The notes below the pieces were generated by a model. The model worked only from the letters and a program-made list of their open reading frames with translations. It did not search any database and had not been told where the DNA came from. DNA of 64,000 nucleotides from Octopus sinensis (lineage: Eukaryota): the NCBI RefSeq assembly GCF_006345805.1, contig NC_043010.1, positions 58,528,001 to 58,592,000 on the forward strand, given 5' to 3'. This document shows, piece after piece, positions 620-64,000 of the stretch (position 1 is its first letter; each line of letters opens with the position of its first letter). Position numbers and translations under genes: made by a program.

Positions 620-643
620 CTACTTTTTAATTCGAGTTGGTAA
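620..643 (-). CDS. Protocadherin A terminal coding micro-exon (LPTRIKK*)
   Basis: Minus strand reads ttctttacttctttttcag|TTA CCA ACT CGA ATT AAA AAG TAG: a polypyrimidine tract plus AG acceptor. Phase 0 matches the phase-0 donor of the large exon. The same peptide is encoded downstream of all six large exons. Confidence 0.85.
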   Translation of the reverse strand, partial: LPTRIKK

Positions 644-1139
644 CTGAAAAAGAAGTAAAGAAACTGATCAGTCATTGATTGATATTTTAGGAATAATATT
701 GATTATTGATTTCAAATATTTAGCCCAAGGCTAGCAATTTCAATGCATTGACTGGTTTAAAAAATCCACATCAGACGCCATGACGGATCTAAGGTGCAGG
801 TACAAGAGGTGGTCAAACTCTGCATAAGGAGTAGACAACCACCATATATAACTATATAGATATATATATGTGTGTGTGTGTGTGCGCATGCGTATAGGTA
901 GACTATATGATGCTTGTGTGTGAATGGCTATACTCCATGGTAGTGAGACATGAGCTCTGCATGCAGAAGACAATCGTAGACTGGAGAGAAATGAAGGTAG
1001 TATGCTCTGTGTATGTGCACATGTCTGACAAAGTGCAAATGTACTGAGTGAAAAGTTGGGACTCACAGAGGACTGAGATGTCTGGCAATATGAAGTTCTA
1101 GAGAAGACTCGCCCATGTCAGCGAAACTGGGTTCTAGAA

Positions 1140-1770
1140 GTGCTGTTTGTCCCACACTTCACAAAAAAACTTCTCACACACCCTACCACAAGAAACCAAA
1201 CTACATCTCTACGCTTCCCCACATTTCCATTTCATGCTCTATGCTTACCTCCCACTCCCTAATCATGTCCTCTTGGCCCTGTTCCACTATATCATTCCTC
1301 TACGCTTGCCTCCAATTTGTGTGTTCCACATGCTCAATCTCACTGTATTATTGCTCTCCACTAGCCCCTGACCTGTGCTCAACCCACACCTAACTAGAAA
1401 ACTTCTCACATACCCTACCACAACAAACCAAACTACATCTCTCCTCTCCCTCACATTTCCACTTCATGCTCTATGCTTACCTCTCACTCCTCAATCCTGT
1501 CCTCTTGGCCCTGATCCACTATATCATTGTTCTCTGCTAGCCCCTGATTTGTGTGTTCCACCCACACACCATGCCTCACTGTATCTCCACGAGCCCCTGA
1601 CCTGTGTTCCACCCACACGTAACAAGAAAACTTTTCACACACCCTATCCCAACAAATCAATCTACATCTCTTCTCTTCCTCACATTTCCTCCTTCTTACA
1701 CTGTGCCTGCCTCTCACTCCCCAATCCTGTCCTCATGGCCATGTTTTTCTGTATTATTGCTATCCGGTAG
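1140..1770. repeat. Three imperfect ~230-bp tandem repeats in the last intron of gene A
   Basis: The ttctcacac..ccctaccac..aaactacatctct motif recurs at ~1171, ~1403 and ~1632. Confidence 0.75.
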
Positions 1771-2309
1771 CCCACCCCACCACTCTATATATACTCAGGT
1801 TCTCACCACCCACTTCTCCCTCCTCTGCACTCTCCAATCATGCTCCTTTCACAATATCCTGCCACTTATATTATGACATTCGAACCTCAAGGGTCTGCCC
1901 TGACACTTGCAGCCATCTGTATCTCTCTCTTCCTTCACTCAACCATCCATTTATATTCTGATCCCTCTCCTTTGTGAGTGTGCCCAGCATTTTGCCACCA
2001 TCTATCTCTATTCTGCTGTCTCCCACTCTCTCATATTCCTCCTCCTACATTTCCCTCAGGCTGGATAACCATGTATTTCCTTTGCGGTAGTGCACCTGTT
2101 TCTGTCTTCATTCCTGATCTCTCTCTCTCTCTCTCTTTCTCTCTCTCTCTCTCTTTCACTTTCCTTCTCTCTGGCTGGATAACCTTGTACTCCCTCTACT
2201 GTAAGACACCTGTTTCTGTGTCTACCTCACTATAATCTTTTATCATCTGATATAAGATCACCTCCTCCAATGTAAGATCACCTCTCTTCTCAAAGAATTT
2301 TTTGTCTTG

Positions 2310-2620
2310 CAAGTACTTGGTGACCCTGTCAGTGCAGGTGCCCCTTAAAAGCTCGCAGTCCACATTGTAAAGTAGTTGGTGTTCAGAAGGGCATCCAACT
2401 GTAAAAACCTTGCCAAAACTGGCCTCAACTGCTCTTGAGCCATGTAAAAATAATTAAGTCCATTCTGCTGAGTTGTTGCTGTTAGAAAGGGCATCCAGCT
2501 GTAAAAGTCAGGCCAAAACAGTTACAGAAGTCTGGTGCAGGGTTCTGCTTGGCCAGCTCCTTCAAATTGTTGCAACCGTGCCAGAAAAGAAGGCAGACGT
2601 TAAACAATGACGATGATATT
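2310..2620 (+). mobile_element. SINE / RTE-tail-type interspersed repeat
   Basis: The gaagggcatccagctgtaaaa...ctggtgcag...acgttaaac(gat)n tail recurs at many other positions in the window. Confidence 0.6.
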
Positions 2621-2754
2621 GAAGATGATGTTCATACAATCACCCGAGCAAACACATACACATACAAATATATATATAGAAACACAAACAGACAGAAAGA
2701 TAGATATATAGACAGAGATAGGTAGATAGATAGACTATATATAGTGTAACTTAC

Positions 2755-60838: not shown

Positions 60839-60969
60839 CTGGAATGGGAAAAGAAACAATTTGACAACATTGAATAAAACTTGTTTGATCAAATGTACAA
60901 CAGACATTATGACAGACACTATGTCTGACCTCACATAATTTGTACTGGCCCCTCATTATAGGCCCCACA

Positions 60970-61190
60970 TATAGAGTGGCCCAAAGGTAGGTTTACAGTT
61001 ATTCAACAATCTCTTTTGCATTCATGTGTTAACAGTTTAGACCTTAATTATGAAGAAAAAATATGAACCCATTATTCTAAGCTAATTGAGTTAATTGTAA
61101 GATAAAAACTGAAATGTAATGAAATGTTTTAAAAGAAATTTAAAGTGCCTGAATGATAACTGTAAACCTACTTTTGGGCCGTCCTGTATA
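60970..61190. mobile_element. MITE (Tc1/mariner-like)
   Basis: Inverted ends ggcccaaaggtaggtttacagttat / ataactgtaaacctacttttgggcc with TA flanks; ~220 bp, non-coding. Confidence 0.75.
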
Positions 61191-62339
61191 TAACTTCATC
61201 AAATATCCATTCACAGTTGTACTTTCCAGATATCTGGATGGGTGGCATTGGGGGCTGAAGGTACAATGGCCTTCACAGAATTACCAATAAAACCACATTG
61301 AACTGGTTTTTAAAGACTCACACAAGAGCCACTGGTTCATAGATGTGCTATGTGTTCTCCTTACACATTCCATCTCCATGGCAACATCCTCTGCTCCTCT
61401 GAACTGTTTCTCACAAGAAATCCTCTCAGCATATCAACCAGGGAAACACTTCATTTCTCATCATGGCCTACTTTATAATTCTCTCATTCTCACTCCTGAC
61501 TCCACTTAAACACTTCACACAATCCTTCTTCCCCACTGTTAGTAACCTACAGGAATTCCATTCCTCCTTATATTCCATTTCTAACATCAGCAACCAGAAC
61601 AAGTCGAGGCTAAACATCAACTAAATTGGTCCTAACCTGCTGGCACCAGTCTACAAGACACACAGTTATTACCTCTTTATGTGTCGTTAATTATTTAATT
61701 AAAGAAATCTTACAAATTATGGCCTGTCTCAAGGTTCTGGATTTGATCCCTATCTTTCATCGGGTCTCTAAGAGATCCCTATATTTAATGGGGTCTGTAA
61801 GAGGAAGTAAAAAGGAGTATAATCCTTTGTAGAGGAGAACAGAGACTGAGTGTATTGTTGATGTTGCTGTTGTTGGTATTTAACCCCAGGCCAGCCTCAC
61901 TGAGCAGCTCAGTAATTAAAAGCTGTCACATATTGACGATTCCATATTCATATATGTCAAGGAATGTACGGTCAGGTATGTCCTTCACTTTAAAGTGTGG
62001 TTTGCAAGAATTTGTGAGCTATTTTCAGCATTTTGAATGACAGGTGTAGAGTCTTGCTGAAACTCTGTGGCTGAAGATCGTGGGAGTTAACATAATTCCA
62101 ATGATGAGGACAGCTGAGATGATGAGGATGACAAAAAGTGATGACATTACCAGCACTGCCACAATGTCAACAATGATGATCAGGAGGGGGAGGATTATGC
62201 AAAAAGAATAAATCTGATTGGATATAGACCCATAAACAGAGTCGGGAGGGTGGATGGGTGGAATAATGGAGAGAGGTAGGAAGATAGACAGAGAGACAGA
62301 CAGGTGTACAGGTAGAGACAAAGACAAACAGAATGATGA

Positions 62340-62520
62340 GTAGATAGATATATAGATAGATAGATAGATAGATAGATAGATAGATAGATAGATAGACAGA
62401 CAGACAGACAACAGACAGATAGATGGCTAGGAAGACAGACAAGAGACAGGAAGAATGCAGACAGATAGGTAACTAGATAGATTGATAGATGGAGACAGAC
62501 AGATTGGCAGATAGATTATA
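62340..62520. repeat. (GATA)n/(GACA)n tract at the start of gene F last intron
   Basis: Directly visible; similar tracts at 2690-2740, 55208-55272 and 58870-58935. Confidence 0.9.
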
Positions 62521-62530
62521 AGTAACTTAC

Positions 62531-64000
62531 CAATATTGTATTGGGTGGACTCTTCTCCAGGGTACCCACGTTTGACCAATCAATCTGAGACTCATACTGC
62601 GGGTAGAAATCTTCCTTACATTCCACAAATGGCATGTTTCTATTATTCATCTCTGAAGAGTACCTCACTGGGGTACCAGGAATACTGCTGCTCTGACACG
62701 GTAAAGGTTGATCAATTCTGTTACATATAGCTGACCTATTAACACCTTTCCTAGTGCTCTTGGCAGAGCGAGACTGACCACTGCTACATTTCACAATACA
62801 CAGTGTGATCGACACTACAATCACCACAGCTACTATTACAGCTGCTACTACAAGGATAATCAATAATGGTACGTCCAGTGTTCTGTTCTTCTCTAAGTGG
62901 ACAGTCGGCATCGGTGCTGATGTCTTGTTAGTGACCCTTAATGACAAAGACACAGTAGTTGTGGCTGACAACACTGGGCTTCCAGAATCCTTGACCACAA
63001 GCACCAGTGCGTATGAGCCAGCATCGTTGAGATGAGGTGCACGCGAGAAAGACATTTGACCAGTTAAAGAGTTGAGTGTAAACAAGCGTTTATTGTTACC
63101 GTCAAGTATTCCATATTTGAGGAACGCATTTAAATGACTGTCTCTGTCAGACGCTCTAATCACAGTGATGGCATTGGTACTTTGCGGGTGGTAGTGGACA
63201 TTGATATGGAAAGGGTCAGTTGTAGGGTAGATGAAATACGGATTATTGTCGTTTCTGTCTAAAACCTCAACAACAACATTCGCTGTGTTATTCAACGACG
63301 GTTTACCATTGTCTTTGACAAAAACCTCAAACTTATACATGTCTTCTTCTTCTCTGTCCAATGGTATGTTGCTGGTAATAAAACCATAATCACTCACCTG
63401 GAACGGTATGTTATTTCTGTCTTTACTCAACAGTGAGAACGTCAGTTGACCAGCACTTGCCAGGTCTGGGTCAGTGGCATTGATAAAACCTATAGGAAAG
63501 TTTGCTTTACCATTCTCATAGGTGAGGAAGTGGAATGTATCTTTGGTAAATTGCGGTTGCACATCATTCACATCCATTACTTGGATTGAGATCTTTCTCT
63601 CCGTCTTTAAAGCAGGGCTTCCATTGTCTTCACACACAATTCTCATGTTGAAATGGTCTAATGTTTCTCTGTCAAGTGGTTTCTTCAGAGTAATCTTGTA
63701 TTCCTTTGATCCTAAATGTGAGAGGACAACTTTATCATGTTCTAATTTACAACTCACTTCTCCATTCGCTCCAAAATCATTGTCCACCACATTCACATAA
63801 GCAAGAAAACTGCCCACTTTAGTTCCTTCGTAAATCGCTGCAGTGTCCTTCTTCAATTCAGACACAAAATTGATCCCTATTTTGGGAGGATGGTTCTTTT
63901 CATTGAGAATATTCACTCGTACAATGGCAAAGGAATTTAAAGAAGGATTCCCTCCATCTTTCGCCTCCACATACATCTTGAGAATATTCTTTGTTTGTGA
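62531..64000 (-). CDS. PCDH: Protocadherin F, 3' part of large coding exon (end of EC3 to tail; 5' part outside window)
   Basis: ORF 62516..63976 is homologous to the other copies and open to the window edge; donor ATATTG|GTAAGT at 62531. Confidence 0.93.

Follow-up and report, generated by a model that had tools for sequence, protein, structure and literature searches.

A 64-kb window of the Octopus sinensis genome (RefSeq assembly GCF_006345805.1, contig NC_043010.1, positions 58,528,001 to 58,592,000 of the forward strand; all coordinates below are counted from its first nucleotide) contains a tandem array of closely similar protocadherin units, and the locus raises the question of how such units are expressed: as separate genes, as variable exons joined to a shared constant region, or in combinations in which the exons of one unit are spliced to those of another. 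The window comprises six units (A to F, with A at the lowest coordinates) of a head-to-tail array of nine (A to I). According to the data presented here, the array very probably represents a set of recently duplicated or homogenised complete protocadherin genes that are selected as whole genes and have no constant region.

A self-comparison of the window yielded a block of approximately 2.5 kb that is present six times with 96-99% identity, along with further shared blocks in between and a spacing of 10.5-14.1 kb from unit to unit. A genome search combined with the flanking sequence detected nine units of 97-98% identity and two older copies of 92% identity, all on the minus strand; the older copies are located downstream of the array and are followed by a fragment. 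All genes of the window are encoded on the minus strand, and the order of the exons within a unit runs from high to low coordinates. The positions of the exons were deduced by motif searches and alignments between units. Additionally, assembled contigs of four public runs from four studies (X1, X2, X8 and X13) were mapped on positions 4801-10800 with a likeness filter of 95%. The exons of unit A and the last exon of unit B are as follows (a slash marks an exon boundary or a joint):

9513..9913, minus strand: unit A exon 1, non-coding leader reaching at least to 9913; donor after 9513 (GGAG/GTAAGT); joint 8158/9513 in X1, X8 and X13, contigs 9695-9784 and 9819-9913.
7988..8158, minus strand: unit A exon 2, 171 nt, non-coding, with short upstream reading frames; AG/TGTCAC...TTTTG/GTAAGT; joints 8158/9513 and 5211/7988.
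2755..5211, minus strand: unit A exon 3, 2457 nt, comprising a 33-nt leader, ATG at 5178, 808 open codons and a phase 0 donor; Pfam matches, joint 5211/7988 in all four runs.
620..643, minus strand: coding part of the unit A micro-exon, LPTRIKK and stop codon; synonymous differences to other units.
10415..10758, minus strand: unit B last exon with LPTRIKK, stop codon and a 3' untranslated region (UTR) of about 320 nt; AATAAA at 10739, 10444 and 10438; X8 contig 10398-10759, X1 and X2 contigs 10413-10605.

The joint 5211/7988, which connects exon 2 with exon 3, was present in all four runs, and the joint 8158/9513, which connects exon 1 with exon 2, in three of them (X1, X8 and X13). Both joints are bordered by GT..AG on the minus strand and are located exactly at the predicted bases. 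Contig depth was zero across most of introns 1 and 2 of unit A. In 17 of the runs listed, 24-33% of the words sampled from an 8.1-kb stretch were present, which corresponds approximately to its exon share. One contig of X13, 693 nt long, runs from exon 1 through the complete exon 2 (171 nt) into exon 3, of which it contains 411 nt. Relative to unit A, this contig shows a single mismatch within exon 2, in which the other units diverge by 7-10%, and a single mismatch within the 411 nt of exon 3, in which each other unit deviates at five or more sites. The genome search detected the exon 1 block, exon 2 and the last exon once per unit and nowhere outside the array; a retrocopy was therefore ruled out as the source of the joints.

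At the 3' end of the neighbouring gene, the X8 contig 10398-10759 halts at the acceptor of the unit B micro-exon, with one base shared with the donor side and 16 further letters unmatched. Contigs of X1 and X2 end at 10413-10423, just past the AATAAA signals at 10444 and 10438, and contig ends overall fall between 10398 and 10423. Accordingly, the last exon of unit B is transcribed. Two further joints in X2, 8113/9513 and 8076/9512, were considered as new splice forms and rejected, as they represent the 126-nt exon 2 of units G, H and I joined to exon 1; units G/H/I are therefore expressed. An X2 contig carries three differences in exon 2. Its assignment to a different unit was rejected, since the differences match none of the units and the base at 8042 that is private to unit A is retained, and the contig is read as an allele of unit A. 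At least three units are transcribed in one bulk sample.

The gene structure deduced from motifs, alignments and contig joints is the same repeated four-exon order that had been described in an earlier note on this DNA, namely exon 1 with the donor /GTAAGT, a non-coding exon 2 of 168-171 nt, an exon of 2457 nt and a micro-exon. The donor of exon 1 (GGAG/GTAAGT) is located about 1.35 kb above exon 2, which is framed by TTTTAG/ on the upstream and /GTAAG on the downstream side. The length of 168-171 nt applies to the units of the window; in units G, H and I, the three most upstream ones, exon 2 measures 126 nt owing to an internal deletion of approximately 45 nt. Exon 3 is preceded by the acceptor TTTCAG, begins with the 33-nt leader that harbours the mini reading frame ATG ATT TAA followed by the start codon, and ends with ATATTG/GTAAGT in phase 0. 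The micro-exon, CCAG/TTA CCA ACA AGA ATT AAA AAA TAA, specifies LPTRIKK and a stop codon and lies 2.1-2.6 kb past exon 3 in units A and B. Position 620, from which the earlier note starts its description, is the last base of the unit A stop codon. Some details of that description require correction. The exon length of 2457 nt is found in units A, B, D, G and I and not in every unit, the remaining exons measuring 2454 nt (F), 2455 nt (C), 2450 nt (E) and 2456 nt (H). The GTAAGT donor of exon 1 is present in unit A and others, whereas unit E reads GTAAT. The term micro-exon describes the coding part adequately (21 nt plus stop codon) but not the whole last exon, which comprises approximately 345 nt in unit B with the 3' UTR included.

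Each unit thus carries a separate set of leader exons, start and stop codons, 3' UTR and AATAAA signals, and the proposal of self-contained genes without a shared constant region is upheld. Splicing within units would be the norm, as each donor would meet the acceptor of its own unit first, and transcripts would end at the poly(A) site of their own unit. The diversity of the encoded proteins, which is concentrated in the extracellular cadherin domains EC1-EC3, would consequently come from which whole genes are switched on and not from a choice of exons joined to a constant region.

Several points weigh against this interpretation. That the public runs represent RNA is a guess, the exon-only coverage and the canonical joints being hard to explain otherwise, and assembled contigs cannot reveal the starts, the ends or the strand of transcripts. 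The joint between exon 3 and the micro-exon falls outside the mapped stretch; it is deduced from the end of the X8 contig, from protein models and from codon conservation. Contigs are also present on 10049-10264, and an X2 contig extends at least 255 nt above the exon 1 block of unit E, where it matches 58563-58592; exon 1 may accordingly extend considerably further, or transcription of the upstream gene may in part continue into this region. The promoter of each unit, placed above or within the exon 1 block, is putative. Moreover, the genome assembly shows a broken reading frame for units C, E and H out of the nine.

The proteins deduced from units A, B and D contain a Pfam match to PF08266 (Cadherin_2) at residues 29-114 and five stretches matching PF00028, with E values of about 1e-66 to 1e-68. 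Six large reading frames of the window, all on the minus strand, contain Cadherin_2 together with cadherin repeats, and this arrangement, with Cadherin_2 at the N-terminus and the repeats behind it, identifies the proteins as protocadherins. A hydrophobic run, LLIILVVAAVIVAVVIVVSITLCIV, is followed by approximately 115 residues in the protein and was read by eye as a candidate membrane span; a Pfam match to a cytoplasmic cadherin domain was not detected in the proteins of the window. Exon 3 would be expected to encode a signal peptide and six cadherin repeats, then the membrane span and approximately 110 residues of the tail, to which the last exon would add LPTRIKK and the stop codon. Public protein entries of 815 residues for the array (e.g. 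P0001) end with ...SPPNTILLPTRIKK (NTILLPTRIKK), relatives in Argonauta hians end with LPTRLKK or LPTRIKK, and more distant octopod paralogues with LPTRTLKR, LPTRIPKR and similar peptides. In unit A and in the two older copies, the micro-exon deviates at up to seven of its 21 bases, and the deduced peptide is still LPTRIKK or LPTRIKR. As the peptide is kept despite these changes, the codon pattern identifies the micro-exon as a coding exon under selection.

The spliced leader contains several upstream ATG codons. One reading frame, ATGGATGAGACAATGGAG, begins at the end of exon 1 and runs to a stop codon in exon 2, another, ATGGGATGA, is located in exon 2, and the mini-frame ATG ATT TAA ends 11 nt short of the main ATG. 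These upstream ATG codons (within 5179-5211, 7988-8158 and 9513-9540 in unit A) are kept in every unit and may damp or regulate translation.

A comparison of the units revealed that sequence conservation is distributed unevenly along the genes. Identity between units amounts to 89-97% for the exon 1 block, to 93-97% for the first 1030 nt or so of intron 1, to 90-93% for exon 2 and to 80-88% for the last exon; intron 2 is mostly unit-specific. For exon 3 as a whole, the units are 97-99% identical. Divergence is limited to 0.1-1% in the 3' half of this exon and reaches its maximum at columns 150-1200, the part corresponding to EC1-EC3. The conservation of the two leader exons, to which the earlier note had pointed, does not speak for constraint, since the adjoining start of intron 1 is equally well kept and even exceeds exon 2 in similarity. 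The pattern of identities suggests that the likeness of the leader exons reflects duplication and patchy homogenisation by gene conversion, not an exon-specific constraint. Taken together, the exon 1 block and the beginning of intron 1 have the appearance of a second tract of homogenisation, apart from the coding exon. The conserved portion of intron 1 (8480-9512 in unit A, with counterparts at 20758-21772, 33951-35010 and 47900-48892) is common to all nine units and may be either a second gene-conversion tract or a regulatory block. A search for known RNAs in the window, including this start of intron 1, gave no Rfam match, and ten reading frames from introns and intergenic regions gave no Pfam match.

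The earlier note had further proposed that transcription reads through to the next unit and that leader exons or large exons are spliced to downstream units, by which the choice of the promoter would be uncoupled from the choice of the ectodomain. Splice sites that are near-identical across units, micro-exons that all encode the same peptide and an interval of only about 0.5 kb between the poly(A) signal of unit B and the exon 1 block of unit A, with contigs located in this gap, are in favour of such an exchange. It is nevertheless extremely unlikely. No joint from the last exon of unit B or from sequences above it to the exons of unit A was observed in 4801-10800, and no cross-unit joint is among the joints listed for this stretch, for which the short assembled contigs, the 95% likeness filter and the length of 6 kb provide a weak test. 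The contigs that bridge exons are of the unit A type on both sides. An upstream promoter could be connected with a downstream ectodomain only if the 2457-nt exon in between, whose splice sites are strong, were skipped and the AATAAA signals were ignored. Splicing of exon 3 to the next exon 3 leads to a stop codon after 7 codons (ATA AAA CCA CGA GAT ATG ATT TAA) and splicing of exon 3 to the next exon 2 after 10 codons; the protein is therefore always determined by whichever large exon comes first in the transcript. The public multi-unit model of 4660 residues, which would fit this proposal, is an artefact, as outlined below. The uncoupling of promoter and ectodomain is thus unsupported and mechanistically unlikely, each unit being equipped with its own strong acceptor and its own poly(A) signals.

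Two related alternatives concern the origin of the transcripts. Long precursors might start from one or a few upstream promoters, with the presumed exon 1 being an internal segment that is continuous with the last exon of the upstream gene. The contigs 10398-10759, 10049-10264, 9819-9913 and 9695-9784 are indeed separated only by microsatellites, the X2 contig of at least 255 nt above the exon 1 block of unit E points in the same direction, and no transcript start could be mapped with assembled contigs. However, the AATAAA signals are located just ahead of the contig ends, the exon 1 block and the first kb of intron 1 form a separate block of 89-97% identity compared with 80-88% for the last exon, and a long precursor would be translated in its first reading frame only, which makes this organisation very unlikely. 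Low-level read-through over the short gaps, by which the leader or the 3' UTR of one unit is placed on the coding exon of another, or a wider version with a shared promoter, is regarded as highly improbable. If read-through occurred, translation control by the upstream reading frames of the leader or the fate of the mRNA would be set in part by the promoter of a neighbour. The wider version starts from the homogenisation of the exon 1 block and the first kb of intron 1 apart from the coding exon; if it were true, all nine units would have a single promoter sequence in common, and selection between the units would have to be epigenetic or random. Conjoined or read-through transcripts of tandem neighbours are a known type of event that matches the proposed cross-unit splicing, and none was seen among the joints listed for 4801-10800. 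Transcripts of this kind are usually minor by-products.

Contigs cover the conserved exon 1 block of unit A to at least position 9913, and part of the region that had been termed the promoter block is therefore transcribed. Further upstream, a block of about 215 nt at 10049-10264 has relatives at 22304-22529, 35533-35745 and 49577-49771. This block, which is situated between the poly(A) signals of one gene and the exon 1 block of the next, shows 83-86% conservation across four such gaps, and contigs of X1 and X8 cover 10049-10264; it could belong to the distal 3' UTR or to exon 1 in its upstream part, or result from read-through.

Within the window, an open exon 3 of 2457 nt is present in units A, B and D only, as units C and E contain frame-breaking 1-nt deletions. 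In unit E, seven bases are deleted within about 170 nt of exon 3, and many more are missing in the upstream block, including the GTAAT donor. Judged from this pattern, the deletions in units C, E and H are probably uncorrected errors of the long-read assembly rather than signs of pseudogene decay. Stretches of single-base deletions extend over 51994-58600 (unit E and its upstream block) and 26000-27300 (unit C) and were also found in unit H.

Public protein models of the cluster fuse two to six adjacent units, and the RefSeq entries of O. sinensis for this cluster are fragments of 352 and 489 residues. The fused models P0121 (1571 amino acids) and P0134 (4660 amino acids) were considered as evidence for cross-unit splicing and rejected. 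P0134 strings together units D, C, B and A and the two older copies, mapping from 40291 to 2755 and on into the downstream flank. Each of its unit pieces begins directly after an in-frame stop codon and is preceded by AA instead of AG; because its pieces start in this way without an AG acceptor, the model is classified as a prediction artefact. The multi-unit protein models and the three broken copies in the assembly should therefore be treated with caution, as they are probably artefacts.

Tandem protocadherin arrays of cephalopods were reportedly described by Albertin et al. in 2015. According to a later study, splicing of diverse first exons to common final exons does not take place in cephalopods, and their diversity was generated by full duplications of multi-exonic genes in one orientation, with gene conversion (Albertin et al. 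2022, PMC9068888). A number of 168 multi-exonic genes is cited for O. bimaculoides (Styfhals et al. 2019, PMC6339937). The array of O. sinensis is a member of this class: it shares the head-to-tail arrangement of co-oriented multi-exon genes, the duplication of whole genes, gene conversion and the lack of shared final exons, and it does not differ in principle from the known cephalopod arrays. The layout of self-contained genes is thus already published for cephalopods, and the array is an ordinary, well-defined tandem gene array, to which the present analysis adds the precise borders of the four exons, evidence for their splicing and the state of each copy. These data confirm at the splice level that the protocadherin diversity of this octopus array is provided by whole genes, and they yield as by-products an exact exon map of nine near-identical genes and a set of unit-diagnostic sites.

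The protocadherin alpha and gamma clusters of vertebrates resemble the octopus array in their tandem exons of approximately 2.4 kb, which encode the ectodomain, the membrane span and the start of the tail, and in the high variability of the outer cadherin domains. However, the variable exons of the alpha and gamma clusters are first exons without an acceptor, whereas in the octopus the large exon comes third and is preceded by a TTTCAG acceptor, which is in use in all four runs. Likewise, the vertebrate variable exons are spliced to three shared constant exons, whereas every octopus unit ends with a separate micro-exon including the stop codon and with separate poly(A) signals. The vertebrate protocadherin beta cluster also consists of self-contained tandem genes without a constant region; these genes are single-exon genes, whereas those of the octopus contain two spliced leader exons and a separate last exon of seven codons.

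The remaining features of units B to F, together with exon 2 of the three units beyond the window in window-scale coordinates, are as follows; exon 3 of unit F extends past the end of the window:

21773..22156, minus strand: unit B exon 1 block, 96% identity to the unit A block, same donor.
20196..20363, minus strand: unit B exon 2, 168 nt; motifs and alignment.
13394..15850, minus strand: unit B exon 3, 2457 nt, open, ATG at 15817; reading frame and Pfam.
35011..35405, minus strand: unit C exon 1 block; motif and alignment.
32618..32786, minus strand: unit C exon 2, 169 nt; motif and alignment.
25235..27689, minus strand: unit C exon 3, 2455 nt, frame broken by two 1-nt deletions; alignment.
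22853..22985, minus strand: unit C last exon, conserved part only; alignment.
48893..49285, minus strand: unit D exon 1 block; motif and alignment.
47157..47325, minus strand: unit D exon 2, 169 nt; alignment.
37868..40324, minus strand: unit D exon 3, 2457 nt, open; reading frame and Pfam.
36743..36883, minus strand: unit D last exon, conserved part only; alignment.
58201..58517, minus strand: unit E exon 1 block, donor GTAAT, many 1-nt deletions around it; alignment, X2 contig continuing into the unit's own upstream sequence 58563-58592.
56386..56554, minus strand: unit E exon 2, 169 nt; motif and alignment.
51994..54443, minus strand: unit E exon 3, 2450 nt, seven bases deleted within about 170 nt; alignment.
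50854..50994, minus strand: unit E last exon, conserved part only; alignment.
62531..64000, minus strand: unit F exon 3, 3' part in the window, whole exon 2454 nt and open; reading frame and alignment.
60692..60838, minus strand: unit F last exon, conserved part only; alignment.
77212-77337, 86481-86606 and 94011-94136, minus strand: exon 2 of units G, H and I, 126 nt each; alignment and X2 contigs.

Two segments of intron 2 of unit A, 5384-5820 and 7600-7990, reached a summed contig depth of up to about 47,000 in all four runs, with many loose ends. These high-depth stretches are dispersed repeats that are abundant in RNA. The region 7560-7908 has relatives at 44057-45075 and 46868-47032. Tandem duplications are present in two further introns: a 384-nt unit is repeated 2.1 times with 97% identity in intron 1 of unit C (32977-33781), and a 232-nt unit is repeated 2.6 times with 82% identity in intron 3 of unit A (1151-1745).

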